IMG/VR virus record: IMGVR_UViG_3300020202_000061
Span: 1 to 64,000 of that record
Direction: 5' to 3' (one strand)
Length of the DNA stretch: 64,000 nt
Translations under genes and position numbers: made by a program
Notes under the pieces: model-generated
What the model was told of the DNA's origin: nothing
The model's input: the letters and a program-made list of their open reading frames with translations, nothing else
Databases searched by the model: none
Part shown: positions 1,945 through 47,201 of the stretch, in pieces
Position numbering within the stretch: position 1 is the first letter of the stretch
How the letters are laid out: each line of letters starts with the position of its first letter

Positions 1945-4308
1945 TTAGAAGGGGAACTGATCACCCGTGTTCAGGACGGTGATCGGCACGTAGATGAATT
2001 CGATGGCCTTGGCGGGCTTAATCGCCACGTCCACCCACAACTCATAACGGTCGATACGGTCAGCCGTGTTGTTGGATTCGTCGCAACGCACCGCGTAGTC
2101 GTAGAGAGCACGGAGCGACTTCAACCCGGCCAGATAACGCTCGGTCACAACCTGAGCAGAACGGCGAGTTACGGCGTCGTTGATCTCGAACAGGAACGGC
2201 TCCAGCAGACGCTGCAAGTCGTACTTCATCTTCGCAATCAAACGCGCCACGTTCACACGATCCAGAGCACTGGCAATGGCCGAGTTCGTCTTCTGACCGA
2301 AGATCACCAGACCACGGTTCGGAATGAACGTGATCGGGTTCACACGGTTCTGATAGGCGATATCACGCATGGAGCGGGTCATGATCAGCGGGATGTAATC
2401 ACCGTCGTTGTCGAGGTAACCCACGCTGGTCGCATTGTCCACACGACCACGAGTGTAACCGGCGGGCGGGAACCACGGAGCGGCCACGCTGTCGGAGTAG
2501 CTGATCGCACGCATCACCATATGGCTGGGCGGTGCGAACACATCCTGTCCGTCCGTAACGTTCGTGGTCAGGCACCAGGGGTACCAGAAACCCGCATACG
2601 GAGTCGGAGCCCGGCTGAAGCCCTGCTCACCAGTCGCCGCGACATTGTTGGCGTTGCTCATCCACTCCCGCACGGTCACTTCACGACCCACCGGGATTCC
2701 CGAGGGGCGCATGAACTTCGGAGTATCCGCGACGATGAACGCGGTCTCGTTGTTGTCCGTGTTCAGTGCGAGCATCTCGTCGTAGAGTTCGGGATAACCC
2801 GGCGCAGCGATAAGCTGGAAGTAGTTCACCTCGTTACGAACCTCTTCGTTCGCGACGATGGCCTTCTGCATACCCTCCACCACCACTTCACGCTGAGCCT
2901 TACGACCGAAGGTCGCTCCGGCAGCGGGCTCCCAGTGATTGTCCGTCTCATCCACCACCACGAAGAAGCCAGCCTCCAGGACCACCTTCTTCGGCGTGTA
3001 GTCGGGGTTGAACTTCTTCACCGTGAAGGTGGTCTTGGACTCACCCAGGTTGAGCCAGAACGTGCCATTGACGACAGCGCTGGCCAGCGGGTCCTGATCC
3101 GTTATCTTGACGTTCCGGGTGATGTCCACCCACGATCCCAGAGTGTACCTCTTAATGATCGGATAGTTGTCGAAGTTCTGCGGATTCCGGATGTCCACCC
3201 AGATCGCACCCTCTGCGGGGAACTGCGGAGCACTGCCCGAGATGACCTTCTGCTCGGCCGTGGGATTGCTCACAGTCGTAGTCAGGATCGGAACCCACTC
3301 GTTGCCACGACCGAAGTCGGTGCCCTCCACATACAGGGCGAAGTCCGTGAACGTGTCGTTGAACCACAGGGTGCCGGTCTCGGGGTCGCTCACCGGCTGA
3401 TTCGGCTGCACCACAACGGCCAGCGGAATGAACCGGGTTCCAGTTCCCACGTAGAGCGGACGCGCTCCAGTGGACGCGATCAGACTGGTATCCTCCCACA
3501 CTGTGTTCTGATTGGGCGTCGGCATGCTGGGCTGACGAATCACAGGCTGGCTCACAAACACACCATCGACGGCACGGAAACGTGCCACCTTCAGGTTGGT
3601 GCCACCACTGGACTGGGTCGTCTTGTACCAGAAATCACCCGTCTGCGGGCTCACCGGAGCGGTGGGCTGAACATGCAGGTTGCAGGTCGAGCCGAAATCC
3701 GCGATCAGATTCGCTGCGGTCGCGGCCTTCCAGGTGCCGCCTTCCTTGTAGCGGATCGTGCCATCGAGATTGGTGTAGTCGAAAGCCCAATCCCCATCAG
3801 CACCGTCCGAGCCGCTGAGCGGCGACGTGGCCACGCGAAATCCCTGCGCAACCCAAGAGGTGCCATTGAACTTGAAGATACCACCGACGACCGCATCCCG
3901 GTCCAACCAGTAGGTGCCATCGGGCGGCGGAAGAACCGGCTCATTGGTGCTCGGCACCAACTCACCCAGATCGACATCCGCACGCAAAATGTAGGCGCGG
4001 TTACCACGGCCCAAGAAGGACCATGCCGCCAACAGACCATACTCGCAAGTCTCGTCCCCGAACACCGGGTCACCCGCGCTCGTCACGAACACCGGGTTAC
4101 CATAGTTCTGGAGCAGTTCACGCTGCGAAGCCACCAGACGAAGCTTGTCCCGCTCGACCGTACCCAGTGCGGTGCCGGTTCCATCCGGCGCGGTCTTGTT
4201 CCGGCGCGTAGCCAGAACCACCAGAGGAATGGTTGTCGGATTCGGGGACCGGTAGATCGACAGGTCCTGCACGAAAACCCGGACGCCAGCGGAAATCAGT
4301 TGAGGCAT
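1945..4308 (-). CDS. Tail sheath protein (T4 gp18-like) with inserted P-x-x-P-x-x-G-x-x-W repeat region
   Basis: N-terminal LISAGVRVFVQDLS; C-terminal PWFPPAGYTRG, YQNRVNPI, IFGQKT, LDRVNVARL, FLFEIND, VRCDESNNT, IKPAKAIEFIY. Confidence 0.95.
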   Translation of the reverse strand: MPQLISAGVRVFVQDLSIYRSPNPTTIPLVVLATRRNKTAPDGTGTALGTVERDKLRLVASQRELLQNYGNPVFVTSAGDPVFGDETCEYGLLAAWSFLGRGNRAYILRADVDLGELVPSTNEPVLPPPDGTYWLDRDAVVGGIFKFNGTSWVAQGFRVATSPLSGSDGADGDWAFDYTNLDGTIRYKEGGTWKAATAANLIADFGSTCNLHVQPTAPVSPQTGDFWYKTTQSSGGTNLKVARFRAVDGVFVSQPVIRQPSMPTPNQNTVWEDTSLIASTGARPLYVGTGTRFIPLAVVVQPNQPVSDPETGTLWFNDTFTDFALYVEGTDFGRGNEWVPILTTTVSNPTAEQKVISGSAPQFPAEGAIWVDIRNPQNFDNYPIIKRYTLGSWVDITRNVKITDQDPLASAVVNGTFWLNLGESKTTFTVKKFNPDYTPKKVVLEAGFFVVVDETDNHWEPAAGATFGRKAQREVVVEGMQKAIVANEEVRNEVNYFQLIAAPGYPELYDEMLALNTDNNETAFIVADTPKFMRPSGIPVGREVTVREWMSNANNVAATGEQGFSRAPTPYAGFWYPWCLTTNVTDGQDVFAPPSHMVMRAISYSDSVAAPWFPPAGYTRGRVDNATSVGYLDNDGDYIPLIMTRSMRDIAYQNRVNPITFIPNRGLVIFGQKTNSAIASALDRVNVARLIAKMKYDLQRLLEPFLFEINDAVTRRSAQVVTERYLAGLKSLRALYDYAVRCDESNNTADRIDRYELWVDVAIKPAKAIEFIYVPITVLNTGDQFPF

Positions 4309-4389: not shown

Positions 4390-4695
4390 TTAGGAAGTGC
4401 CCTGACGAATTAGTCGAAGACGAGCGGGTTTGACAATATTCCAAAACACCCACCACGTATCGTCCGGATCGGGAGGGTCCGTGGTATGATCCGGGTCCAA
4501 GCGCAGACCAGAGACATCTACCTCCCAGATGTCACCGGTTCCATGATTGGGGTCCAATTTGGTGGCCATATACACACCCCCAGCCCGACCCGGCACCAAG
4601 CCTCGACGACGAATCCGTGCACGATTTTCCGATGCCGTGTAGTGATACATCACCGATGGGTGATCAAAACCCTCTTTTAGATCAGTAAGTTTCAT
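4390..4695 (-). CDS. Small ADP-ribosyltransferase-fold (Tpt1/KptA-like) protein with MKLTDLKE leader
   Basis: Start reassigned to ATG 4695 (ATGA overlap with upstream stop); YHYT..RARIRRRGLVP..GVYM..IWEVDV..VKPARL. Confidence 0.55.
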   Translation of the reverse strand: MKLTDLKEGFDHPSVMYHYTASENRARIRRRGLVPGRAGGVYMATKLDPNHGTGDIWEVDVSGLRLDPDHTTDPPDPDDTWWVFWNIVKPARLRLIRQGTS

Positions 4696-5489
4696 CCAAG
4701 GCTCTCGAACACCAGGATATCGTTCTCGTCCGCACGGATAATCAACTCGTCCAGGGTCTGGAACCGGTCGAAGTCCATCCGCTCGTCCAGTTGCTTGATC
4801 GGGACGTGAATCTCGTAAATGTGCTTGGTTTCGTAGACCTTGGCCGGGGGGTTCATCCAGACCGGCTCCAACACGAACGGTAACGTGAACACGTATAGCG
4901 GATTCGCCTCCAACCCGGTGGGCACGGCCTTCTCCATGCGAACCTCGCCCTCGAAACGGATATTCCGCATGAACGTCCAATCAGCCGGACTATTCCGGAG
5001 TTCGATATCGAGGGATGGATTAAATTGAGTACAAAGCTGCTCGACCAATTGGTAACCCTGGTCGTTGTTGGAGGCCCACATCCGAACCTCGACGTTCACG
5101 GTGTATGGGACGGCCATGTGACGTTCCACGGTCTTCTTTTTGCCGGGTTGGTTCACCAAGAGTTCTCCGTCCGGGGTCATGGCGCGTTCGATATAGTTGT
5201 ATTTTTCCCGATGCTGCGGGTTCAGGCGGAGTTCGTCCGACTGTCTGAGACCGGTCATGTAGATGGCCATCACCGGTAGGTAGGCCATGGTGTTGTCGGA
5301 CCCACCGTGCATGATGTAGGCTCCGACCGTTCCCATATCCCCATACTTCACCGGTACGTCCAGGAATCGGGACTTCCCATCACGCTGGATACCGGTCTGG
5401 ACCTGATAACCCCGGAACGCCGCCATCACCTGTACGAGGTAGCGCTTCAACTGGGCATCGTAGAAAAATGGTTTGCGTTTGAGTACCAT
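4692..5489 (-). CDS. Tail sheath stabilizer / tail completion protein (T4 gp15-like)
   Basis: FFYDAQLKRYLVQ, VPVKYGD, VERHMAVPY, QLVEQLCTQFNPSLDI, WMNPPAKV; context next to the sheath gene. Confidence 0.8.
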   Translation of the reverse strand: MVLKRKPFFYDAQLKRYLVQVMAAFRGYQVQTGIQRDGKSRFLDVPVKYGDMGTVGAYIMHGGSDNTMAYLPVMAIYMTGLRQSDELRLNPQHREKYNYIERAMTPDGELLVNQPGKKKTVERHMAVPYTVNVEVRMWASNNDQGYQLVEQLCTQFNPSLDIELRNSPADWTFMRNIRFEGEVRMEKAVPTGLEANPLYVFTLPFVLEPVWMNPPAKVYETKHIYEIHVPIKQLDERMDFDRFQTLDELIIRADENDILVFESLG

Positions 5490-5497
5490 GCGAATAT

Positions 5498-5920
5498 TTA
5501 CTCTCCCCCGATCATAGCCGTCCGGAACTGAGCGAGGAATCGACGCAACAAACGGGGATCAGTGAAGGCAGCGTTCTTTCGAGGCTCTTTCTCGGTGCCG
5601 TATTCGAAATAGACGATCCGATTGAACGGGTTCTGGTCGAGGAACTCCATAGCCATCTGATGCAACTCCTTCAGGGCCGCTCGGGTTACTGTATCGGTCT
5701 GGAACTCCACACCCATTTCCTTGGTGTGCTGGAACACTCTGATCCAACCCCAACGATAGCCCATGGTGTAACTCCAATGTGGTTCTTGCTGGCCTGTGAG
5801 TTCACGAGCACGGTCACGGATCACTTCCCAATGAGCACCATCACGGAAATTACCGTCGTCCATGATCCAGCCAGCACGATTATAGATGTAGCCTTCTCTG
5901 AGAAGTTCGACCAACCTCAT
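5498..5920 (-). CDS. Putative internal head protein, single GWI-H-GWIR domain
   Basis: MRLVELLRE leader; AGWIMDDG..H..GWIRV. Confidence 0.7.
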   Translation of the reverse strand: MRLVELLREGYIYNRAGWIMDDGNFRDGAHWEVIRDRARELTGQQEPHWSYTMGYRWGWIRVFQHTKEMGVEFQTDTVTRAALKELHQMAMEFLDQNPFNRIVYFEYGTEKEPRKNAAFTDPRLLRRFLAQFRTAMIGGE

Positions 5921-7437
5921 CTGCGATGGCTCTCTGCCGCTTTCATCTTCGGACGTGGCACAAATTTACCGCCGATGTATTTCTGTGCATCCTCATCGAA
6001 TGTGTCGAGCCATTCGTTGTAGGCGTCGATCACCCTCTGACTGGGATTGTCAATCTGACGCATCAGCTTGGGATGGTTCTTGACCATGGTGATCAGGATA
6101 TCGTCGGGAATCTGATACTTGAAACGGGTCGAAGCCCTGAGGAGGTATTCGCCGCTCTTCGGAGCCGCAAGCTGCATCGCCTCACGAGTCGGGTGCGGGA
6201 TGTCCAGAATGGTCGAACCCACTCGGGACACTGCGAGCCTCTGGAGTTCCGGCGTCTGATCCTTGACGTGGGCAATCGTCCTGGGCACCCGCTGGACCGC
6301 AACTTTCATGGCCAGCGGGTCCTGATCCTTGATGACCTGAATCAGATCGGGATTCTCCTGTGCCACAAAGCGTTGAACCTCCGGACCCGGATTAACGATC
6401 TGACGGATACTCTCGGGATCAAGATGAACCGCATGCAACTTCAAGTCATCACTGATACCGGGGAACTTCTTGAGAATCTCGACCAGAGCCATGTTTCGAT
6501 GACCATAGCGGGGCTGCGGGGTCATATTCATGGCCAATTCAATCTCATCCTCGGTGGGATTCGAGATGTTAAAGAGGTTCCTCCAGTTCTTTCTGATACC
6601 GTTCTGCCTCATCTCCTCGCTGGGATTCTCGAACATCCAAAGTGCCCCATTGAGTTCGGCTTTCTTGGCGATTTCCGGAATCTTACTGAGCCAACGATAG
6701 TTGTGAGCGAGGCTGAACTTCTGTTGCTCCTCGGCGGGCTCTCCACGGATTGATTTGTACTTGGCCGGGAACGTCGGAATCTCCTTATCATTCTCGTCCA
6801 TGAACTGGTTGCTCTCGAAGTGCATCTGCACCTTTCGCCCGTTCGGGGTCAGGACGATGTAGAGCGGCCCATCTTTGTTGTAATCATTGAAGTGGTTCTG
6901 GCTCTCCGTAGATGCCGTACACCACTGGGTACCACGACCAAGATAGCAGGAGGCTTCCTCCGTGGTCGGCACATACACAGCGCCTTCCGGCCCCCTGTAG
7001 ACGACACGAACCTGCTCCTTCAACTTAGCATCGATCATGGCCTGAATCTGACGCTCACTCGTGGTGTCCACGAGTTCCATCGGCTTGATCACCTTCGTGT
7101 AGAGATCAATCGGTCCCTTGTAGCGGTTGATGTCGCGCTGTGCGGGTTCCAGCTTGGGCTTCAACGCATCGAATCGGCTCAGATAGCTCTTGGTTCGGTC
7201 GATATCCTCGACACGAAAGAGACCACCCAGATATGAACGGATCACCCACTGAGCATACTTTTTGTCCCCGGTCGGGTCCGTACTGATAATCACGTCGAAA
7301 AACGTCTCCGGATGCATGAACGTGCGACTGGGGGAATTACGCTCGTTCTGGACAGCGTGATCCCACAACGCCTGCTGGTAATTCCGGCGAAGGAAATCAA
7401 TGCGATTCTCTAACAGGAGGAATTCCAGTAATCTCAC
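5917..7437 (-). CDS. Putative internal head protein with GTQWCTA domain and C-terminal short helical repeats
   Basis: GTG start, MRLLEFLLLE leader; DPTGDKKYAQW, ASCYLGRGTQWCTA, QFMDEND; ~23 aa repeats (I.NP..E.Q..AV). Confidence 0.75.
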   Translation of the reverse strand: MRLLEFLLLENRIDFLRRNYQQALWDHAVQNERNSPSRTFMHPETFFDVIISTDPTGDKKYAQWVIRSYLGGLFRVEDIDRTKSYLSRFDALKPKLEPAQRDINRYKGPIDLYTKVIKPMELVDTTSERQIQAMIDAKLKEQVRVVYRGPEGAVYVPTTEEASCYLGRGTQWCTASTESQNHFNDYNKDGPLYIVLTPNGRKVQMHFESNQFMDENDKEIPTFPAKYKSIRGEPAEEQQKFSLAHNYRWLSKIPEIAKKAELNGALWMFENPSEEMRQNGIRKNWRNLFNISNPTEDEIELAMNMTPQPRYGHRNMALVEILKKFPGISDDLKLHAVHLDPESIRQIVNPGPEVQRFVAQENPDLIQVIKDQDPLAMKVAVQRVPRTIAHVKDQTPELQRLAVSRVGSTILDIPHPTREAMQLAAPKSGEYLLRASTRFKYQIPDDILITMVKNHPKLMRQIDNPSQRVIDAYNEWLDTFDEDAQKYIGGKFVPRPKMKAAESHRR

Positions 7438-7447
7438 GATAAGTCCC

Positions 7448-9097
7448 TCACATGACGTAATATTTACCCACAGACTGATTCAGGACTTTTTCGAACGCCT
7501 GTTCGAGTTGGTGCTCGAATCGAGCGATGAGTTTGGTGGTGAACTGTTCCGCACCCGGTCTCAGAGTGTGATCCCGGTCCAGACGACGTGGAAGCTGACG
7601 ATTCAGACGGACGCGGCCCGTCATCAGGTACTGGGTGAACCGCTCGTAGACCCACTCCGCATACTGCACGAGCTTTCCCTTACGGGCGGAGTTCATCCGC
7701 CCCAGCATGTGACCGAGGAGCTTCCCGTAGGCCCGGAAATAATCACGACGGAAAATCTCCCGATTCCAACCACTCACCTTGGGCCACTCCACCCCATAAG
7801 CACGCCGGGTTAAGCTCTCGACGAACTTATCGAACATCCCATGGATATTCGGCTCATAACCCTGAGTAAGGACGTGTGCGGTTCGGTGCGCCATCATCCA
7901 GGGCGACCGCATCGGCACATACGCCTCGTCCCGAAGGTTTCCGGTGTGAATGATGTTGATCCGGTTCCGCGCATTATTCAGGCGGGAGATTCTCTGGGCC
8001 ACATCCGGTCCCATACGCTCGCTGATCCAATCCAGCCGGACCTCACCCTTCTGGGTGTGCCAGTCATAGTCGGGATCAGGATTGGCCCAGAAATACAGAT
8101 TGAGGTTCTGTGGAATGCGGGCGAACTTCGTGGCGATCTTCCGGATCACTTCGGGATCACGAATCGCTTTCACATCCCTGTCCGAGAAGTGCTGTTTCTC
8201 ACGCTCGTAGCCGTGCCACTTCCGACGCTGCGTGGCCAGATTCTGTTCCAGATCGGGATCGACCTGGAAGTCACCGAGCGGGGCTTCGTTGAGCTTGGAC
8301 TTGAGCAGATCACGCACAAACGTATTCACGTCCACCTCGCGGTAGAACGATCTACTACCACCCTCGTACTCGTCAATGCGATAGACTTTCTTGGGCGAGT
8401 CCTTGATCAGGATGAGCATCCGGTAAATCGCGAGTCTCGTGACGTTGCGGATGGACCAACCAAAACCCAATCCATCGTCGGTCTCAACCACACGAATCCA
8501 CCCGCTCTTCAGGGCAAGACCACCAGCCATTCCATGCTCGTCCGGATTGTAATGCGGGAAATAGCCCTCCGCCTCTGCTTCATGATTCTCGAACCCGACC
8601 GGGATGAACTCACCTCGGTCAGTAATCCAATAACCATAGTCCGTACCGGGAATCTCAACGGCTTCGGTGATCACCCCACGATAACGCTGATTTAGCCAGC
8701 GCTGGGCCTGTCTGGGGTCGTCAAAGCGGCCCCAATCCTGACCGATCTGGAGCATGATCTTGTAGTCGAACCGATCCTTGATGATCTCGTAGACTTTACG
8801 AACCGCTTCACGGCTCGGTTCCAGACCGAGTTGGAACCCGATCTCACCACCCTCGGTGTAGACGCGGACCCACCCGTTACTGAACCCGTACAGGTAAAAG
8901 TCACTGTCCGGGACAAGATTCATCTTATTTTTGATGATATGAGGATCGCGTCCTTCCAGGTCCATATCGGAAACGATCTGATCGTAGAACGCCTCCTGCA
9001 TGATCTGGGTATGACCACCCTCGTGGTAGACCCCATCGGCGTCGATCCAGCCATAGTAGTAGAGATGAGATTCGAGGAGCAGGTCGATCAACTTCAT
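7448..9097 (-). CDS. Putative internal head polyprotein: 2x GWI-H-GWIR domain + HRxxH domain
   Basis: MKLIDLLLE leader (ATG 9097 or GTG 9100); modules linked by VITE and KLNE; PWMMAHRTAH. Confidence 0.75.
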   Translation of the reverse strand: MKLIDLLLESHLYYYGWIDADGVYHEGGHTQIMQEAFYDQIVSDMDLEGRDPHIIKNKMNLVPDSDFYLYGFSNGWVRVYTEGGEIGFQLGLEPSREAVRKVYEIIKDRFDYKIMLQIGQDWGRFDDPRQAQRWLNQRYRGVITEAVEIPGTDYGYWITDRGEFIPVGFENHEAEAEGYFPHYNPDEHGMAGGLALKSGWIRVVETDDGLGFGWSIRNVTRLAIYRMLILIKDSPKKVYRIDEYEGGSRSFYREVDVNTFVRDLLKSKLNEAPLGDFQVDPDLEQNLATQRRKWHGYEREKQHFSDRDVKAIRDPEVIRKIATKFARIPQNLNLYFWANPDPDYDWHTQKGEVRLDWISERMGPDVAQRISRLNNARNRINIIHTGNLRDEAYVPMRSPWMMAHRTAHVLTQGYEPNIHGMFDKFVESLTRRAYGVEWPKVSGWNREIFRRDYFRAYGKLLGHMLGRMNSARKGKLVQYAEWVYERFTQYLMTGRVRLNRQLPRRLDRDHTLRPGAEQFTTKLIARFEHQLEQAFEKVLNQSVGKYYVM

Positions 9098-10398
9098 CAC
9101 ATCACCATGATCTTGCCTACGGAACTCTCCATGAGATGGCCGAGTTCGTGATTGATGATCTTCTCGAACAGTTTGACGGAGCGGTTCAACTCCTGGACGC
9201 TACCCTCCAGGACGGCGTCGTCGTAGTGGTATTCCCCAGATTCATTCGGACGCCCCCAGGGGAGTTCCGAGGGGAGATTCGCGTTGAATACGGTTCGACC
9301 CAGCAGCATATACTGGGTGACGGCCTCCACCAGGAATTCACCGGGGTTGTTCAGGTTGCCATCGCGTGCGGCACGGGTGGTTCCCAGAACGTGGCAGATC
9401 GCCCGCACATAGGTGTTGCGGTACCAGGGACTGGCAAAGTCCTTCAGAGCCTCGGGATGTGCTTCCGCATCCAAATGATACTGCTTCAGGGTTTCCTCCA
9501 GGAACTCTCTGAACATCCCTGAAATTTTCCCACCCTGTGTGGTCATCAACAGGACGTGGGCGATACGGTGAGCGACCATCCAGGGCGAACGCAGGCTGAC
9601 AAATCCAACATCCGTCGCCAAGTTGTTCGCGATCACGATGGTGATCGACTGCTTCTGATCGGGCATCCGGAGGACACGACGAGCCGCGTCCGGACCGATA
9701 TGCAGACCGAGATTCCGAGGCCGTACCACACCCAGGAGAAGATTGCCGGGTCCACGCGTCTCCTCCGTGTTGGGATGACCCTCACTGGTCCAGAAATACA
9801 GATTGATCTTCTGTGGCACTTTAAGGAAGCGCCGCTCGATCTTCTTCAGCACGCCAGGATCATTCAGAGCCTTGACATCGACTGGTCGATAATCCGGGCG
9901 GAACTTCTCCTTCGGGCCGGTCCAGGTCTGCTGCTGGATCAGGTTGTTCGCGTTGAAATCGGGGTCTACCTGCATCGCATTGATCGGGGCCTCCGCCACC
10001 ATCCGAGTGGGACTCTTCATGAACTCGCGGATGAACGCGTTGGCCTTGCCGATGTCGGTGAAATCTCCATACCTGTCCTGCCCAGTGGTCCGTTCCGCAT
10101 CCACTCCGATCTCGTCCGGGTCCATCGTCCTGATGAGTTCGAGCACCGCATAGAGTGCACGATTCGTCACGGTCTCGATCAGGAAGTCGATCTCCAACCG
10201 GGTGTAACTCTGAACCACACGAACCCAACCCTTCCTCAGGGCCGCAACACGTCCCGCCACGGGCGAACCCTGGAAGCGGACGTTTGCCTCGTAATCGTGC
10301 TCCTGGAAGCCCACGTTGATGAACTCACCCTGATCGGTGATCCAGTAGCCGTAATCGGTCTCGGGGATGGCCCCCTCTAGGAGTTGGAGCAGTCTCAT
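9097..10398 (-). CDS. Putative internal head polyprotein: GWI-H-GWIR domain + HRxxH domain
   Basis: MRLLQLLE leader; YGYWITDQG..H..GWVRV; MVAE linker; PWMVAHRIAH. Confidence 0.75.
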   Translation of the reverse strand: MRLLQLLEGAIPETDYGYWITDQGEFINVGFQEHDYEANVRFQGSPVAGRVAALRKGWVRVVQSYTRLEIDFLIETVTNRALYAVLELIRTMDPDEIGVDAERTTGQDRYGDFTDIGKANAFIREFMKSPTRMVAEAPINAMQVDPDFNANNLIQQQTWTGPKEKFRPDYRPVDVKALNDPGVLKKIERRFLKVPQKINLYFWTSEGHPNTEETRGPGNLLLGVVRPRNLGLHIGPDAARRVLRMPDQKQSITIVIANNLATDVGFVSLRSPWMVAHRIAHVLLMTTQGGKISGMFREFLEETLKQYHLDAEAHPEALKDFASPWYRNTYVRAICHVLGTTRAARDGNLNNPGEFLVEAVTQYMLLGRTVFNANLPSELPWGRPNESGEYHYDDAVLEGSVQELNRSVKLFEKIINHELGHLMESSVGKIMVM

Positions 10399-11597
10399 AC
10401 GCGTGCCTCCGGCCGGAGCTTCATCAGGTCACGAACGAACGCGTTGGCCTCGGCCTCACCATCGAATCTATGCGTGGGCGGGGTAGCCCCGAGCAGATCA
10501 AAAGTGACGCGGATGGGTTCGGGCCAGGGGTCACTCTGCTTGATCAGTTTCAATACCCCATAGAGGGCAAGCTTCCGCACACTCCTTGGGTTCAGATCGA
10601 AGTCCAGATAGCGCGGTTCCGTCACGACCCTGATCCACCCCGCCTTGTAGGCGCGGACGATCCGATTCAGACCCTCACCCTTAGGGAAATACTGATCCGA
10701 GACGACCTGATGGAACTGACCGCGCACCGGAATGAATTTGCCCTCGGCGGTGATCCAGTAGCCGTAGGAGGTGAACGGGATTTCCTCCTCGGTGATCTGA
10801 CCCTTCAGGAGGGCGCGAATAGCCTGGGTGAGCTTCTGACGGGTCATTTCCCCACCCGCTTTTCCAGTCTCCAGATAGCAATTATTGGTCTCGGCGTTCT
10901 TGATTAGCGCTAGAAGACTTTTCAACGCGTCTTTTGTGGCGTATCTGGGATCGAGTTCGACATCAAATTCATGTCCGTTATCGATGACTCTGATCCACCC
11001 TGAACGCTTCGCCACACCTGTGCCATCCGTAAGCTTCTCCATAGGGATGCCAAAGGCTTTACGTGCGTCTCTTTCATGTTGTTCATGTGCGACTGCATGC
11101 ACCTTACCCTGCGCGTCGATCCAATACCCATACGGAGACCAATCGTGGTTTTCCGCCACCATCTGGGGTCGCCGCTTCCCGAGGAGGAAACGCATGAAAT
11201 ACTTGGTGAGTTCTTGCTTGGTCGGGTAGTGCCGACGCTTGAACTTGGGCTGGTCGTAGGCGAACCGCACATCGAACGCGATCTGGTTGTCGTCGTGAAT
11301 CTGATGGATGTAGGGGAGCACCGCACGCAGCGCCTCGGCCGTGCACGTCTTGGGATCGCGCACCGCGATGCTCACGCCGTTACGGTCGATGATCCTGATC
11401 CAGCCCAGACGGTATGCCTGTTCGTAACCGGTAATTCCGGGTGTGGTTATCTCCTCCGGATGCCTCTGAAAATACCTGTGAGCAACCATCGCATGGCTCT
11501 CGTAGGGCACCTCCAGATACTCACCATGATGGGTGATCCAGTAACCGTATTCGGTATCGGGGATGTTGGCCTCAATCAGGAGGTCGAGCAGTCTCAT
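10395..11597 (-). CDS. Putative internal head polyprotein: 3x GWI-H-GWIR domain
   Basis: Start reassigned to ATG 11597 (MRLLDLLIE, ATGA overlap); three YGYWI modules linked by MVAE and QITE. Confidence 0.75.
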   Translation of the reverse strand: MRLLDLLIEANIPDTEYGYWITHHGEYLEVPYESHAMVAHRYFQRHPEEITTPGITGYEQAYRLGWIRIIDRNGVSIAVRDPKTCTAEALRAVLPYIHQIHDDNQIAFDVRFAYDQPKFKRRHYPTKQELTKYFMRFLLGKRRPQMVAENHDWSPYGYWIDAQGKVHAVAHEQHERDARKAFGIPMEKLTDGTGVAKRSGWIRVIDNGHEFDVELDPRYATKDALKSLLALIKNAETNNCYLETGKAGGEMTRQKLTQAIRALLKGQITEEEIPFTSYGYWITAEGKFIPVRGQFHQVVSDQYFPKGEGLNRIVRAYKAGWIRVVTEPRYLDFDLNPRSVRKLALYGVLKLIKQSDPWPEPIRVTFDLLGATPPTHRFDGEAEANAFVRDLMKLRPEARV

Positions 11598-12910
11598 GCC
11601 GCTTTCCCCCTCTGACGGTTCGCCTTGTAGAGTTCCCGGAAATACTGATAGAGTTGGTTCTTGGTCGGGTAGCTTCCCCATGGGGGCAACTTGAAACCAC
11701 GTCCTATATCGAAAATGATCGTGTGGGGATCACGCCGATCATCCACCCCACGAATGAAGGGGAGGATTGCGCGGGCTGCGGCCGGTGCAACATCTCTGGG
11801 GTCCAGGATCGACACGTGCACGTAATCGTTGGGATCATTCGGGTCGATGATCCTGATCCAGCCCTTCTTGTAGGCGGTCTCGAACACCCCAAGCTCTCGG
11901 GTATTGCCCTCATGGGGATTCTGTTCGAACCACTGCTGCGCCGTCCAATGATGGGCCTCGTCGTCCACCTGGAGATACTCCCCGGTGTGGGTGATCCAGT
12001 AGCCATAGTAGGTGCCGGGGATATCCACGGCCTCCGCCACATTCCTGCGAGAGGTGGAGAAGAACAACTTCTTGAAAAACTGCATGACCTCGGCCTTCTC
12101 CGGTCGATGCGGCTTTGTGAAATTCAGACTCGTGTGCGGATCGTACACGTCCAGGTAGATCGTGGTGGCATCGGTCTGGGCGAGATAGCCCAGAACCGTA
12201 TTCAGGGCTTCGCGGGTGAGCTTCTTCGGGTCTTCCACGCTGATGTGGATGACGTGCTCCAGATTGCCTCCGGCACGAACCGTATACTTCTGCTGGTCCA
12301 CGATCCTGATCCAACCACGTTCATAAGCCGTGGTGATTGTGTGATCGTAGGTGAGGTGGCTGTAATCGATTCCTAGATGACGGGCCGCGACCGCACCATG
12401 AGCCTCAGCCGGAACCGGAATCATTCTGCCCCGGTCGGTGATCCAGTAGCCATAGTCGGTCTCGGGAATCTCCATCTCCATCAGGGTGGATTCCCTGACA
12501 ATCTGACGCCGCATCTGATTGAGCCAGCGTAGTGCCCGCCTAGCGTCTGGGAACTCGTCGTAGGTGTTGTTGAGTTGAATCCCGATTAGGCGACCGTCCA
12601 CGATGTCCTTGATCAGTCTCTTCATGCCCCGGAGCGCATTCTTGGTGGTGTTGCGACTGACCTCGAATGCCACCTCACGATTGGACGAACTCACCCTGAT
12701 CCAACCCGCTTTGAACGCGTATCCGTAGTGCTCGGCTTCGACCAAGTCGTATACCGACTGGCCCTTCTGGAGCGGCCCATGATCGCGCAGAATATCATCG
12801 GCGAAGTATTCGGACACGATTATCTCATGACTTCCCGATAGGAACTTGCCCTCGGACGTGATCCATCCGTAGATGGTTTGGGATTCGGTGAGGAAGTCGA
12901 GCAGTCTCAT
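11594..12910 (-). CDS. Putative internal head polyprotein: 3x GWI-H-GWIR domain
   Basis: MRLLDFLTE leader; three modules linked by IVRE/TLME and NVAE. Confidence 0.75.
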   Translation of the reverse strand: MRLLDFLTESQTIYGWITSEGKFLSGSHEIIVSEYFADDILRDHGPLQKGQSVYDLVEAEHYGYAFKAGWIRVSSSNREVAFEVSRNTTKNALRGMKRLIKDIVDGRLIGIQLNNTYDEFPDARRALRWLNQMRRQIVRESTLMEMEIPETDYGYWITDRGRMIPVPAEAHGAVAARHLGIDYSHLTYDHTITTAYERGWIRIVDQQKYTVRAGGNLEHVIHISVEDPKKLTREALNTVLGYLAQTDATTIYLDVYDPHTSLNFTKPHRPEKAEVMQFFKKLFFSTSRRNVAEAVDIPGTYYGYWITHTGEYLQVDDEAHHWTAQQWFEQNPHEGNTRELGVFETAYKKGWIRIIDPNDPNDYVHVSILDPRDVAPAAARAILPFIRGVDDRRDPHTIIFDIGRGFKLPPWGSYPTKNQLYQYFRELYKANRQRGKAA

Positions 12911-15033
12911 TGCCGATCCCTCACGAAAGCCACACCACGAATTCCGTTCCAGGCCCCGGACATCCGGTAACGACCATCATCCTTAAGGAGTTCGAAACGA
13001 TATCCCTGAGGGGTCCACCCCGCGTAGTTTTTCGCGTTGAATTCGTTGCGCTTGGCATCCTCCCCGTTGATCTCCAACACGGCGGGTTTCACGCGCTGGA
13101 TGAACTCCAGGGTGATTCGCTTGAGCATCTCCGTGATCTTCGGGAACAGTCCGGTCCCACCCTGGGGACGCTTCCCAATCACACGCCAGACCCTGAAATA
13201 ATGATCATCCGGATCGAACGGACCGCGCAGGAACCGGGCCTCAAAATCGTACGGACCGATCCGGAACTGAGCAGTGTTCTGGTCCTCCCAGTAGTAGCGA
13301 TCCTGAACGGGCTGATCCTCCAGCAGTCTGGGCTGATGATACCTGAAGAAGTAAATCCGATATTCCGGATAGGCACGACGCAACACCTTATGGACGTAAT
13401 CCAGACGGTGCTCGTCCATCGGGCGTCGATCATCCGGATCGCGAATGCTGATCATCTTTCGTCGATCATCAATACGACCCACGGCCAGGGCGTTCCCTGC
13501 CTCATCCGGATTGTGCATGGACCGGGACACACCCTGATCCTTCACGGTCTTCAATTTCCCACCCGGCATCACATAGAACATCAACCCACCCCTGTGATGA
13601 CCGATGTCGAAATAGTGGAGACGCTCGTCCTCCATGATCTGCCTGATCTCACTCGCGCCTTTTCCGAAGTACCAAATCTCATACTCCGGGTATTGCTGAC
13701 GAAGCTTCTTCGCGGCGAACTCGATGGTGCGCTCGGGCAGATCGAAGTAGGAGTTTCCCGGAGCCAATGGGGTGCGGATGCTGATCTTCTTTCGGAGATC
13801 ATCGATACGTCCCACCGCGAGGGTATTCTCCTCGATCTCGGGATTGTGGTTCATCAACCCATCACGCTCATCACTGACAGACTCGAAGTCTTCAGGGGTG
13901 GCACCGACCATCATGTAGCCGACATCATCGACGATGAGCTTTCCACCCTTCAGGAGGTACCAGAGTTTGGCCCCACGGTAGTGGCCGATCTCCTGGTAGT
14001 TATCCCAGGATTCGTGGATCACATCCCGCTGGGGATTGAACCCGCTCTGAATGGCCCGCTTGATCTGGTTCGGATAGAACGCGAGCCAGACAGTTTCAGA
14101 CCCACCTGAAGAATTGTTCTCTTCGAACATAACCCCATCGAAGCCCGCAGCTTTAATGGCCTGGACGAACCATTCGCCTTCCTTATCGTCGAAAAACTCC
14201 CAGGTGTTCTGGGGATTGCCAATGTAATTCTCCATCCAATCCATATCCACGCCTTGGGCGGCAAGCTTCTGGACATCCTTCCAATAGATGCCAGCCTCGT
14301 AAGTAATTCTCAATGGATTCTGGATGCTCAGATAGACCGGGATCACTCCACCCTTGCCACGATGTCTGGGTTGGTTCACAAATTCCCTGGCGAACGCTTC
14401 GTTCTCGGCGAAGTAAAATCCGTGGCGCTGCACCTCCACGGGAATACCCATGAACGTGGTGAATCCTTTACGATTCTCAAACTTATCGAAGAGCGGGCTC
14501 GGGGTGCCATGGAACACCACTAGGGGATTTCCCTGCTGGTCCACGACCTTGCTCTGCTTGAACCACGCACGAAATTGGGGGCTCTGGATAAGTGAAGGCT
14601 GTACATCTTCACGAAGGCTGCTCTTGAATTTTTCAAGCGCCTCATGACCGCGAATCTTCGAGATGATTTTGACCTGACGGGGATCGAACGCGACATACTC
14701 TTGCTGACCATTCGGATATTGGCCAATCATGCTGTCATACCCGGCCGCTTCCAATTCGTCACGGCGCTTCGGACTGACCGACTGGAACGTCTTGGCATCG
14801 GTCCGGTGATAGGGATTCTGAAATAGGAGTTCGGCCTGGATCACGATGGGCTCATCCCCATCGACTTCCGAATCCATCATAGCGTAATCCAACGCGTCCT
14901 TGAAGGACGGACTGAAATAGGCTCCCACGCCGAATGCTCCGCCTTGTCGGCGAAACTCATCCTTATCGATGGCCGTGCCATGATAGCCCACAAGCGGTGT
15001 GATGTTGGTTTCGAGCAGGTCTAGGAGCCTCAT
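12907..15033 (-). CDS. Polyvalent protein: 2x ADP-ribosyltransferase (ART-PolyVal-like) + 2x IGH domain + C-terminal domain
   Basis: MRLLDLLE leader; GYHGT..GVGAYFS..AGYDSM..EYVAFDPRQVK and FRAWFKQSKVVDQQGNPLVVFHGT..GFYFA..AGFDGV..AFYPNQIK; duplicated IGH..GGKL..HNP..LAVGRIDD..ISIR. Confidence 0.75.
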   Translation of the reverse strand: MRLLDLLETNITPLVGYHGTAIDKDEFRRQGGAFGVGAYFSPSFKDALDYAMMDSEVDGDEPIVIQAELLFQNPYHRTDAKTFQSVSPKRRDELEAAGYDSMIGQYPNGQQEYVAFDPRQVKIISKIRGHEALEKFKSSLREDVQPSLIQSPQFRAWFKQSKVVDQQGNPLVVFHGTPSPLFDKFENRKGFTTFMGIPVEVQRHGFYFAENEAFAREFVNQPRHRGKGGVIPVYLSIQNPLRITYEAGIYWKDVQKLAAQGVDMDWMENYIGNPQNTWEFFDDKEGEWFVQAIKAAGFDGVMFEENNSSGGSETVWLAFYPNQIKRAIQSGFNPQRDVIHESWDNYQEIGHYRGAKLWYLLKGGKLIVDDVGYMMVGATPEDFESVSDERDGLMNHNPEIEENTLAVGRIDDLRKKISIRTPLAPGNSYFDLPERTIEFAAKKLRQQYPEYEIWYFGKGASEIRQIMEDERLHYFDIGHHRGGLMFYVMPGGKLKTVKDQGVSRSMHNPDEAGNALAVGRIDDRRKMISIRDPDDRRPMDEHRLDYVHKVLRRAYPEYRIYFFRYHQPRLLEDQPVQDRYYWEDQNTAQFRIGPYDFEARFLRGPFDPDDHYFRVWRVIGKRPQGGTGLFPKITEMLKRITLEFIQRVKPAVLEINGEDAKRNEFNAKNYAGWTPQGYRFELLKDDGRYRMSGAWNGIRGVAFVRDRQ

Positions 15034-16178
15034 GTCGTGTGCAGCCCCAGCTTCTTGCGCTCGTCCTCATCCCCGGTCGGATCGGAACGCTTCTCACGGT
15101 CCGTGATCACATCATGGATCGAACGTAGCTCGAACTTGCGCTCGCGATCCTTCTCGGAGCGATCCCGCAGGAAGTCGCGGAACTTGGCGGTCCAGTTGTA
15201 GGGTTGCCACTCACGCTTGTTGTCGATCTCTCGAAGCTTCCACTTCCCACCCTGAAGGCGATAGAGACGATTCGGCACAAAATCGATGCGGAGGAACCAG
15301 TCCCCTTCGATGGCATTGGCCGGGAATGTCGTGCCCTGGGTCACGGGCAGACCATTATCGGGCTTGCCATCGTCGTTCCAACGATACGGCTTTCTCCGAG
15401 GGTGATCCGGGTCGAACCACATGATGGTGGTGTCGTACCACGTGGTGTAGGCGTGCTCGTTTGCGAGCCGCTGGTTCGCCTCGGTCAGTGCCATGTCCTG
15501 AGCCTGGGTCCGGGCTTGTTCGGCCAGAGTCTTTCCGTACTGGTCCTTGCGCTCGAACAGATCGAGGAACTCCTGCTGGTGACGGAGCGGCTTCAGGACC
15601 ACACCCATGATGTGTCTGATCCACATCGGGTCCACCCCGTTCGGTGCCCACGCGTGCTTCCGCACCTCATACCACTTGTTGGCCACTCGACCGTTCTGAT
15701 CGACATCACGGAGGTGGGGCATCTCGATCACGTCGCCCGGAATCAATCGGCGACCGAGTTCGGCCTCCATCGTGTTCACATGGAGTTCCAGCGTGATGAT
15801 GTCGTTGGCCAAGGCCATACCGAACTTGGCGTATTCGAGTTCGAACTGGCTGATCTGGTAGACCCCACGAAGCATGGGGATCACCTCGAAGTCATACTCA
15901 CGGTCGCGGTTCTCACCGAGGATCGTGTCCTGCAACCCCATGAACGCACCGATCCGGGTCGGTTCCTCCACCCGGTTTTTATCATCCACCTTCACGTTCA
16001 GGGCATCGCGATCCTGCGCGAATACCCCCTTCATCCTGTAGACGTTGACCAGGACCCCACCCATGTTGATGTGATCCTTCACGATGTCCCGGATGAACGC
16101 GGAGGTTTTCCGGGGCGCACCACCGTGGGTACCCGCCTCATACAGTTCGAACGGCTTCACCGGAGAAAACTTTGGCAT
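15030..16178 (-). CDS. Neck / head completion protein (T4 gp14-like)
   Basis: LQDTILGENRDREYD, LRGVYQI, KFGM, LGRRLIPGDVIEMPHLRD; adjacent to the gp13-like gene. Confidence 0.75.
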   Translation of the reverse strand: MPKFSPVKPFELYEAGTHGGAPRKTSAFIRDIVKDHINMGGVLVNVYRMKGVFAQDRDALNVKVDDKNRVEEPTRIGAFMGLQDTILGENRDREYDFEVIPMLRGVYQISQFELEYAKFGMALANDIITLELHVNTMEAELGRRLIPGDVIEMPHLRDVDQNGRVANKWYEVRKHAWAPNGVDPMWIRHIMGVVLKPLRHQQEFLDLFERKDQYGKTLAEQARTQAQDMALTEANQRLANEHAYTTWYDTTIMWFDPDHPRRKPYRWNDDGKPDNGLPVTQGTTFPANAIEGDWFLRIDFVPNRLYRLQGGKWKLREIDNKREWQPYNWTAKFRDFLRDRSEKDRERKFELRSIHDVITDREKRSDPTGDEDERKKLGLHTT

Positions 16179-16184
16179 CGGGGG

Positions 16185-17000
16185 TTATCCTCGGATCGGC
16201 AATGGAATCTCGGAGTTGTCCGCGTAGAGTCTCAAATCCTCTTCCAGCTTCTCGCACTCATCCAGGCCGGACTGCTTCAGGGCATCACCCTTCAGGGTGG
16301 TTCCGCCTTGAGCGCCCGGCAGCGATCCGAACAACGAGTACTTCTCACCGAGGTGAATCTTCAGCTTTGCCAGGGTGAATCGTTGGAGCCAGTTATAGGC
16401 TTGGTGATCGTTGAGGAGTTCCTCATACCGCTTCATCACCCAAATCTTCAGCCCGACCGTCTCCTTCACGCGCGGGGTCTGGGTGATGATCAGGGTGTGG
16501 TTCTCGTTGCGGAACCGGAAATGGATGTGGCGGGCGAACAGACGGTCCAAGGTCTCCTGGTACTGCATGAGAAAGTCGTACCGGGCCAAGTCCATCGTCG
16601 CCCCATACTGACCCGCGCCGCCACGGAGCAGGATGTTGGCGGTGGCCGCACCGAACGATTCGAACCGTCCCACACCACCACCGACGCCCCCGAACAATCC
16701 ACGACCACGGAAGATGTACTCGATGTTGTCGATGCGCTCGTTCAACTGATAGACCTGTCGGAGCGGCTCCAGCGTGAGAAACGCATACCGCACGTAGACC
16801 CGTCGAGACCGGGTGACACGATACTGGTTTACGGCCGCCTCGAACGCGATCTGGTAGTCGAGGTCTTCCAGATGGACCGTGATCCGCGCTCCACCCAGTT
16901 GGGTGTTACAGATCAGGAACAGGCGTTCCATCTTCTTTCGGGTTTCCTCGGAGACTTTCTGTCCGAAATCAAGGGGTTCAATCGTGCTAAGGTCGCTCAT
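16185..17000 (-). CDS. Neck protein (T4 gp13-like)
   Basis: Start reassigned to ATG 17000 (GGAG RBS, TAAATA at 17027-32); LGGARITVHL, WLQRFTLAKLKIHLGEKYSLFGSLPGAQGGTTLKGDALK. Confidence 0.85.
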   Translation of the reverse strand: MSDLSTIEPLDFGQKVSEETRKKMERLFLICNTQLGGARITVHLEDLDYQIAFEAAVNQYRVTRSRRVYVRYAFLTLEPLRQVYQLNERIDNIEYIFRGRGLFGGVGGGVGRFESFGAATANILLRGGAGQYGATMDLARYDFLMQYQETLDRLFARHIHFRFRNENHTLIITQTPRVKETVGLKIWVMKRYEELLNDHQAYNWLQRFTLAKLKIHLGEKYSLFGSLPGAQGGTTLKGDALKQSGLDECEKLEEDLRLYADNSEIPLPIRG

Positions 17001-17072
17001 CGGGGTCTCCCCAAGGGGTTTCCCGGTATTTAGGACTTGAATTTGTTTGGGTAATTCCTCATCTCCACAGGG

Positions 17073-17300
17073 ATGAATGAGTTCTTCGATACCCCTTGGA
17101 GCGGCGTTTATTTTGTGGTCCTCGAAGTGGTCACCCTGTGGCACGCCTGGACCTGGGCCAAGTCACAGAACTCGGAGAATTTCTGGGATTTGTTTCTGGG
17201 CAGATTCGCCCTCTGCCAGTTCGCCGCAATGGGCTTCTACCTGATTCTTAACTACTCCACCAAAGTCATGATGGGGTTGCTCAACTGGATGGTTATCTGA
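17073..17300 (+). CDS. Small membrane protein
   Basis: Two hydrophobic segments; coupled to the next ORF. Confidence 0.55.
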   Translation: MNEFFDTPWSGVYFVVLEVVTLWHAWTWAKSQNSENFWDLFLGRFALCQFAAMGFYLILNYSTKVMMGLLNWMVI

Positions 17301-46918: not shown

Positions 46919-47149
46919 TTAGCAAGCGACCCTGAAATTGGTCAGGTCGAATGCCGGGGACGACATTGAATGAAGCTCATTGAGCTTATCCTGATGTTCT
47001 TGATCTCCCATGCTCGGGTCAATCTCGTGATAGAACACCATATTCAGATGCTTGCGAATCAATTCTACCTGCTTCGCGTTGAGTTCGACTTCAGGCTCGG
47101 AAAGTTCGAAGAAACCCTGGAGCCAATAACAGAAATCACGACTTGTCAT
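46919..47149 (-). CDS. Hypothetical protein
   Basis: FCYWLQGFFEL..QVELIRKHLNMVF, a common phage motif. Confidence 0.7.
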   Translation of the reverse strand: MTSRDFCYWLQGFFELSEPEVELNAKQVELIRKHLNMVFYHEIDPSMGDQEHQDKLNELHSMSSPAFDLTNFRVAC

Positions 47150-47201
47150 GGTTTAACCCCTTTGCATAGGAGATATGCAAAGGGGTTAGACTAATCAAGT
47201 C

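Follow-up and report, generated by a model that had tools for sequence, protein, structure and literature searches.

A five-module protein with two ART-PolyVal domains

The locus considered here raises the question of what a phage protein built from several small domains does, and where it acts. It lies in a 64,000-nucleotide stretch of DNA (the window; positions 1 to 64,000 of IMG/VR virus record IMGVR_UViG_3300020202_000061), where an original prediction had placed at 12907-15033 a five-module protein with two ADP-ribosyltransferase (ART) domains, a duplicated His/Arg domain termed IGH, and a fifth domain at the C-terminus. The gene is a single ATG-to-stop open reading frame (ORF) of 708 amino acids (aa), P0001, which matches these coordinates exactly. 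The five-module layout held up, the (-) strand, which the prediction had not given, was found here, and the modular pattern is more than chance. We interpret P0001 as a polyvalent effector of a T4-like jumbo myophage that is packaged in the head and enters the host by injection, with the domain activities proposed below, and assign this reading a probability of roughly 0.6. The gene and its parts, with module borders taken from hidden Markov models (HMMs), are as follows.

12907..15033 (-): whole gene, consisting of leader, ART1, ART2, IGH1, IGH2 and a GNAT-like C-terminal domain (ORF and translation)
15010..15033 (-): N-terminal leader MRLLDLLE, residues 1-8, ending L-L-E; candidate capsid-targeting/protease-processing signal
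14650..15021 (-): ART1, ART-PolyVal, residues 5-128; H18, Y39, D99 plus E111 (PF18760)
14041..14550 (-): ART2, ART-PolyVal, residues 162-331; H175, Y207, D299 and invariant E313 (PF18760)
13624..14016 (-): IGH1, residues 340-470; invariant H351, H396, G408, R409 and D411 (internal repeat, family columns)
13312..13623 (-): IGH2, residues 471-574, the shorter copy (HMM, model of residues 471-708)
12910..13308 (-): C-terminal GNAT-like domain, residues 576-708; conserved G[TS]GLFP loop, G657, D659, R662, N663, Y670 and Y678 (fold searches, family alignment)

The Pfam family ART-PolyVal (PF18760) matches the whole protein with an E value of 2.5e-37 in two stretches, and Pfam assigns nothing else to either ART domain. 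Scored separately on the DNA, ART2 (14044-14541) reaches 82.4 bits and ART1 (14650-15000) 54.3 bits against a curated cut-off of 31.2 bits; no further copy exists in the 347.5 kb phage record. The signature of phage polyvalent proteins that had been predicted for both domains was thus recovered by an HMM search with the family itself, and the two motifs on which that prediction had drawn were located at residues 109-115 (QQEYVAF) and 313-319 (ETVWLAF). For the remaining three of the five modules (IGH1, IGH2 and the C-terminal domain), neither Pfam nor PHROG has a matching family. At the level of the whole gene, megablast against 50,697 phage records returned zero matches, as did a phmmer search of the 708-aa protein against the PDB. 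Polyvalent proteins, which belong to phages or conjugative elements, are encoded beside late or virion genes and travel with the DNA. They are defined by 2-15 functionally unrelated domains per polypeptide, and P0001 has five modules of three kinds that are swapped in its relatives.

A word search of 5.8 billion proteins yielded just four full-length relatives. In their alignment the core that is conserved comprises ART2, IGH1 and the C-terminal domain; P0002-P0004 lack ART1. Residues 1-145 of P0002 (L014 10001-10435) replace it with a weakly matching Pol-beta nucleotidyltransferase module (sub-threshold matches to PF01909 at E 0.008 and PF18765 at E 0.023), and another module, to which no family could be assigned, takes its position in P0003. 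IGH2 is confined to P0001 and P0002. The relatives also carry, between ART2 and IGH1, one or two inserted copies of the GWIR module, a unit of about 120 aa with the pattern Y-G-Y-W-I-T ... H ... G-W-I-R-V. From these sequence comparisons, ART1 and IGH2 appear to be lineage-specific additions in a module-shuffling cassette.

The duplicated IGH domain resembles PHPT1 and gelsolin

BLASTP aligned residues 351-456 with residues 479-563 at 37% identity (E 4e-18), so the duplication of the His/Arg domain is real. A profile of the region spanning IGH1, IGH2 and the C-terminal domain recovered 51 proteins among 1.84 billion representatives; about 17 of them carry IGH and about 35 match the C-terminal domain. 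IGH adjoins ART-PolyVal in P0010, P0015 and P0038, and it is also present in one protein of 1487 aa that has a SAM lyase domain and in another of 1951 aa that has DUF6934. IGH and GWIR modules co-occur in P0003, P0004, P0015 and P0041. The kinship between them that the original prediction had suggested found no support: the hhalign probability is 0.5%, and a common origin is therefore unsupported at the profile level.

Structural comparisons used an AlphaFold2 model of residues 471-708 (pLDDT 91.7), built on a cleaned 63-row alignment obtained after two rounds of trimming misaligned fragments. An earlier model of residues 336-708 was discarded (4-row alignment, pLDDT 62.6, weak fold matches). 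In the predicted model, IGH2 has the element order beta-beta-alpha-beta-beta-alpha-beta(-beta). The ESM Atlas feature search returned zero matches for either IGH copy, and structure searches with IGH nominated two folds, the PHPT1/Janus phosphohistidine phosphatase and gelsolin. For PHPT1/Janus (PF05005), TM scores in the Atlas were 0.44-0.49, and Foldseek gave a probability of 0.85 to 2nmm_B on a low-confidence model; for gelsolin, the TM score with IGH2 reached 0.61.

When a profile of 28 IGH domains was compared with 177,635 PDB sequences, PHPT1 ranked top with an E value of 0.14, or about 1e-6 per comparison. The alignment sets IGH G-R-I-D-H on G-R-I-S-H of PHPT1 and YP[DE]Y.I on KYPDYEV. 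Because G-R-I-D-H aligns with G-R-I-S-H, the invariant Arg of IGH (R520 in IGH2) falls on PHPT1 R78. Both R78 and H53 are catalytic-site residues of PHPT1 (PMC4817053). The second invariant His of IGH (H396/H507) stands just before helix alpha1, like PHPT1 H53, judged by its position in the model. The PHPT1/Janus family is known mainly from eukaryotes.

We put homology of IGH to PHPT1 at about even odds, suggestive and not proven, and rate phosphatase activity lower. A stronger proposal is that IGH is an active viral PHPT1/Janus homologue, injected beside the ARTs, that would erase His phosphorylation in host sugar-transport or two-component systems. We offer it tentatively and hold it to be rather unlikely; if true, IGH would be the first phage phosphohistidine phosphatase and would connect phage effector modules with the PHPT1 family of eukaryotes.

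The C-terminal module is a minimal GNAT-like domain

The fifth, C-terminal domain proved to be a family of its own. Its homologues mostly stand alone as proteins of 115-170 aa (P0006, for example, at 140 aa) or form the C-terminus of proteins of 250-330 aa, and the stand-alone homologues make the module an independent unit. A weak match to the phage family DUF6934 (PF22028) was obtained for two members only, at E 0.08.

Fold comparisons were more informative. In Foldseek against the PDB, the top-50 rows were all GNAT enzymes plus the GNAT-like ODC antizyme, with probabilities to 1.00 and a best E value of 1.6e-3. VIA-align against 48,161 representatives gave Z 8.4 over 114 residues at 3.2 A to 1vhs_B, and nearly all of its top 50 are acyl-CoA N-acyltransferase-type folds, among them phage Mu Mom (8bv8, Z 7.1). 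The ESM Atlas returned phage clusters first, including DUF6934 (TM 0.68, 2.6 A, 119 residues), and then GNATs; a BFVD search returned many phage proteins, large multidomain ones among them. The GNAT-like assignment thus agrees across two aligners and three libraries, and by both scores the model contains the GNAT core fold. Ahead of alpha3 is a Gly-rich G[TS]GLFP loop, and alpha4 contains a near-invariant Tyr670. The loop is at the right position, but the canonical pyrophosphate-binding Q/R-x-x-G-x-G/A motif of GNATs is absent. We consider the fold of the C-terminal module, as a minimal GNAT-like domain related to DUF6934, to be well supported by the predicted model; acyl transfer by it may be expected from that fold.

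Weighing enzymatic roles for IGH and the C-terminal domain

A number of observations weigh against the injected-effector reading and its proposed activities. Pfam gave no GNAT match for members of the C-terminal family and assigned them no family, and the C-terminal profile found zero matches among PDB sequences. The best VIA-align Z of 8.4 barely exceeds the range that the tool calls common, and the model has four consecutive N-terminal strands with no helix before alpha3, so that the alpha1-alpha2 pair that GNATs have between beta1 and beta2 is missing. On the side of IGH, the gelsolin-like 7c2f_B scores equally to PHPT1 in the same profile search (E 0.15 versus 0.14); gelsolin matches IGH as well as or better than PHPT1 does, and the fold may therefore be generic. 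PF05005 (Ocnus) gave zero matches to the genome at E <= 10 and to the 28 IGH domains. Arrays of 3-5 IGH-like modules are found, an arrangement as compatible with a binding or spacing role as with an enzymatic one. In the ARTs, the placement of D99 and D299 in the NAD+ pocket is a prediction drawn from the family alignment and the literature. Finally, the phage is known exclusively from metagenome contigs.

Much of this evidence feeds an alternative in which the ARTs are the sole enzymes. IGH would then be a non-catalytic, gelsolin-like binding or spacer module, like the 'LPD' domains of polyvalent proteins, and the C-terminal domain an antizyme-like binder, both serving packaging, DNA association or target recognition. 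Gelsolin is indeed the best structural neighbour of IGH2 and also appears in the sequence search, and the plainly repetitive GWIR modules form arrays in the same way as IGH-like ones, with up to 7 copies. Many GNAT enzymes score no better than the antizyme or the 'DNase I' subdomain of RNase E against the C-terminal domain, which has neither alpha1-alpha2 nor the canonical motif. Nonetheless, an invariant His...His...G-R-x-D is kept even in divergent array copies of IGH, which suggests a ligand-binding or active site more than a mere spacing role, and the C-terminal family keeps its Gly-rich loop and Tyr where GNATs bind CoA and protonate the thiolate. We regard a protein with ARTs as its only enzymes as a credible minority reading, and favour the polyvalent effector with activities in all three kinds of module.

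Two divergent ARTs with intact H-Y-D residues

The ART-PolyVal active site consists of a His in strand 1, a Tyr in strand 2 and an Asp in strand 5 (PMC5512222). Conservation was assessed in an alignment of 25 ART-PolyVal domains from P0001, its relatives and six phage records. The His is kept in 22 of 23 aligned domains, the Tyr column is mostly aromatic, and all 22 domains aligned at G[YF]D[GS] have its Asp. H, Y and D are intact in both copies (H18/Y39/D99 in ART1; H175/Y207/D299 in ART2), with strands assigned by alignment. ART1 additionally carries a PARP-like Glu (E111), in whose column ART2 has Val; ART2 orthologues have an invariant Glu (E313) two residues upstream of that column.

The original prediction had taken E111 for the catalytic acid. 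This does not agree with the alignment, in which the E111 column is variable (Glu in 7 of 23 domains) and the Asp invariant. The rule of thumb changes accordingly: instead of a PARP-like Glu, the acid diagnostic of ART-PolyVal is the G[YF]DG Asp. We likewise rejected the notion that ART2 is dead because E became V. Both ARTs keep H, Y and D, and the sequence therefore offers no ground for calling either copy inactive, as had been suggested.

The two copies are not close relatives. ART1 shares 46% identity (E 7e-34) with the second of the five ARTs in a 2387-aa protein of Dolichospermum phage Dfl-JY45, whereas ART1 and ART2 match each other at E 0.13. A recent tandem duplication was rejected on these values; because ART1 is nearer to the cyanophage ART than to ART2, the two are members of different subfamilies. 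ART1 is a swapped-in module, as judged from these comparisons. ART2 is the most conserved part of the protein, with 68-86% identity in P0002-P0004, and a word search with ART2 alone found one stand-alone relative and no more. Elsewhere in the genome, outside the window, a 3128-aa open frame at 104085-113468 (+) has an insignificant match to ART1 (E 0.28); it is probably a giant multidomain protein.

Neither domain belongs with the ART of T4 Alt. The Alt clade has an R-S-E active site (PMC5512222), and both P0001 domains have H-G-T and G-x-Y-F where the R and S-T-S motifs of Alt/VIP2 would be. The original description of an injected, Alt-like modifier therefore divides: a comparable function is plausible from context and leader (see below), and membership of the Alt clade is not.

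What the ARTs modify is a separate matter. Their targets could be nucleic acids or small molecules instead of proteins, through DarT-like ADP-ribosylation of DNA or RNA or through NAD+ depletion. H-Y-[EDQ] ARTs do include DNA- and RNA-modifying enzymes, and some ARTs are NADases (PMC9503650); moreover, the DNA-modifying, GNAT-like Mom of phage Mu is a structural neighbour of the C-terminal domain. However, domain searches detected no nucleic-acid-binding domain in the protein, and the authors of the ART-PolyVal family predict protein targets (PMC5512222). We judge non-protein targets unlikely. That one ART is a dead pseudo-enzyme retained for binding is more doubtful still: ART2 has Val in the PARP-like Glu position and relatives dispense with ART1, but that Glu is a minority residue in the family, H and D are present in both copies, ART2 is the best conserved module and has E313 close by, and the family is described as H-Y-D (PMC5512222).

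A leader shared by a variable gene cassette

We now turn from the proposed activities of the injected effector to its proposed route. The motif M[RK]L[LI][DEQ][LF]L stands at the start codon of six consecutive genes (5917-15033 (-)) and has one other match in the 347.5 kb searched, a 74-aa ORF on the opposite strand (46970-47194 (+)). The six leaders end in L-x-E at residues 8-10 (LLE-8, LTE-9, LIE-9, LLE-8, LLE-9 and LLE-10), and the bodies behind them are unrelated or partly related: the ART protein, GWIR arrays, a shared 280-aa domain and one other protein. In related phages (L009 10001-18943, L010 10001-14694), every cassette gene has the leader, again with an L-x-E end, and none of the flanking neck, gp15-like and sheath genes does. 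The neighbouring genes are listed below.

16185..17144 (-): neck/head-tail adaptor gene, gp13-like (phrog_211, E 5e-23)
15030..16178 (-): virion structural protein, 382 aa, at the T4 gp14 position, translationally coupled (phrog_11591, E 7e-42)
11594..12910 (-): cassette gene, leader MRLLDFLTE and three GWIR modules
10395..11597 (-): cassette gene, leader MRLLDLLIE and three GWIR modules (start revised)
9097..10398 (-): cassette gene, leader MRLLQLLE followed by a single GWIR module and, at the C-terminus, a domain of 280 aa
7448..9097 (-): cassette gene, leader MKLIDLLLE followed by two GWIR modules and, again, that 280-aa domain at the C-terminus
5917..7437 (-): cassette gene, leader VRLLEFLLLE and an unrelated body
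4692..5489 (-): T4 gp15-like tail sheath stabiliser, the downstream cassette boundary (PF16724, E 8.5e-22)
1945..4308 (-): tail sheath (phrog_10581, E 1.3e-180; PF17482)

Alt and the internal proteins of T4 have nothing in common but a capsid-targeting propeptide of 10-20 residues that is removed by gp21, and the processing determinants of this capsid-targeting sequence (CTS) are at residues 8 and 10 (PMC3012670, PMC5694885, PMC9026906). The jumbo phage encodes a T4 gp21-type prohead protease (Peptidase_S77, PF03420; 81.3 bits, E 1.1e-23) at genome 67324-67755 (-), just outside the window (L012). At the sequence level the cassette leaders therefore resemble a T4-type CTS in being a short propeptide shared by unrelated proteins, with an [LI]-x-E end and a gp21-type protease encoded in the same genome; an LIE-9 site fits the T4 cleavage logo (PMC9026906). 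By analogy with T4, we infer that the leader signals packaging and processing, and that the cassette encodes ejected proteins as a variable set.

The gene order is conserved across four related phages, with the cassette placed between the neck and gp15-like genes. The adaptor gene is followed by the 382-aa gene, the ART gene, five more genes, the gp15-like gene and the tail sheath. The loci of P0002, P0003 and P0004, on other contigs, have the same order of gp13-like gene, 382-aa protein, ART protein and variable genes, and the P0003 contig, which extends far enough, continues with gp15-like and sheath genes. The same 382-aa neighbour is present in L009, L010 and L014, and the relatives' gene at the adaptor position carries PF26809 (Phage_T4_gp13). 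ATGA overlaps join the ART gene to both of its neighbours; such overlaps of successive genes make late co-expression very likely.

This same setting could be read as that of a protein that is never injected, having instead a late cytoplasmic role or decorating the neck or collar, with the leader a relic of tandem gene duplication. The gene does lie among neck and tail genes and not among head genes; the Pfam search of the protein found no MuF, portal-fusion or metallopeptidase hub domain of the sort usual in polyvalent proteins; and several cassette genes have paralogous modules in common. A duplication relic is nevertheless hard to reconcile with a leader retained on unrelated bodies (the ART protein, the GWIR arrays and the 5917-7437 protein) and, in L009, fused directly to a different domain. 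The leader also ends in L-x-E in a genome with a gp21-type protease, and ARTs encoded beside morphogenesis genes are typically head-packaged (PMC9503650). We find a non-injected protein improbable, and retain packaging and ejection as the preferred reading.

Several features of the cassette deserve separate mention. The longest ORF (10395-11681 (-)) begins at 11681, which is probably not the true start: the ATG at 11597 bears the leader, forms an ATGA overlap with the upstream stop and yields a protein of 400 aa. GWIR modules occur in 1-3 copies per gene in four neighbouring genes (7448-12910 (-)), and further copies lie in the ORF at 5501-5965 (-), at genome 273423-273968 (-) and in L010 11860-14694; a related phage's 944-aa protein holds 7. 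Neither Pfam nor PHROG matches the module, and its profile is not similar to that of IGH. The C-terminal domain of about 280 aa common to two cassette genes (7451-8290 (-) and 9100-9996 (-); 33% identity, E 8e-49) bears the motif S-P-W-M-x-A-H-R-x-A-H-V-L, and no function could be assigned to it; in L009 15257-16156 the leader is fused straight onto this domain with no GWIR module between. Long open frames also run antisense to the cassette and neck genes, at 12910-14109 (+) (399 aa) and 15204-17033 (+) (609 aa). Most likely they do not code and are shadows of the coding strand, which is GC-rich.

Proposed mechanism and implications

Combining these results, we propose that P0001 would be produced late, together with the neck and tail proteins. 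Its CTS-like leader MRLLDLLE may carry it into the prohead core, where the gp21-type protease would probably cut the leader off after L-x-E; the mature protein would be packaged with the DNA and then ejected into the host. There, the two divergent H-Y-D ARTs are expected to spend NAD+ to modify different host macromolecules. The two PHPT1/Janus-like IGH domains could, given their weak homology, bind a phospho-ligand or hydrolyse it, the likeliest being a phosphoramidate such as phosphohistidine carried by signalling or transport proteins of the host. The minimal GNAT-like domain may, as its fold suggests, transfer an acyl group, or bind acyl-CoA or the target.

Two rare domain families, with about 50 relatives among the 1.84 billion representative proteins, gain structural assignments from this analysis. 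One could be a phosphohistidine phosphatase, the second a minimal acyltransferase; with the ARTs, this would perhaps place three host-modifying chemistries in one injected protein. In uncultured jumbo phages, the leader-marked cassette seems to correspond to the internal-protein system of T4. Its leader, a candidate packaging signal, offers a simple sequence tag by which ejected effectors could be sought in metagenomic phages.

Comparison with known systems

The C-terminal domain shares with GNATs and DUF6934 a superposable core of beta-sheet, alpha3, beta5, alpha4, beta6 and beta7 (Z 7-8.4), and with GNATs the Gly-rich loop before alpha3 and a Tyr in alpha4. It differs from GNATs in that four N-terminal strands replace alpha1-alpha2 and in the absence of the canonical motif and of a Pfam match.

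PHPT1 is a 14 kDa phosphohistidine phosphatase whose fold has six strands with a helix pair flanking them. IGH has the same order of elements as PHPT1/Janus-Ocnus (PF05005), and G-R-I-[DS]-H ... K-I ... YPDY-x-[IV] align between them. Its invariant Arg falls on R78, and a conserved His precedes helix alpha1, as H53 does. In contrast to PHPT1, IGH has no Pfam match to the family, superposes at TM 0.44-0.49, has a shorter helix alpha1 and an extra invariant His in its N-terminal I-G-H, and is viral, occurring in tandem copies and arrays.

As a whole, P0001 resembles the ART-PolyVal polyvalent proteins described by Iyer, Burroughs, Anand, de Souza and Aravind (2017) in combining several unrelated effector domains with more than one ART-PolyVal copy. 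Its gene likewise lies among late virion genes, its modules are shuffled between relatives, and GNAT and Pol-beta nucleotidyltransferase modules accompany the ART. Unlike those proteins, P0001 is small, at 708 aa; hub domains (metallopeptidase, MuF, ArdC or others) were not found in it, and it has a short shared leader and a multi-gene cassette instead of one giant protein.

Another close parallel is T4 Alt with the internal proteins IPI-III. In both systems an ART and diverse proteins share only an N-terminal propeptide of about 10 residues ending in [LI]-x-E, a gp21-type protease is encoded, and the set of proteins varies among related phages. They differ in that Alt is an R-S-E (Alt/VIP2) ART and the P0001 ARTs are H-Y-D, that the leader sequence is not that of the T4 CTS, that the cassette here lies between the gp14-position and gp15-like genes, and that packaging and cleavage are predicted for the system described here. 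By analogy, we infer that P0001 acts like T4 Alt as a head-packaged host modifier, from outside the Alt clade.

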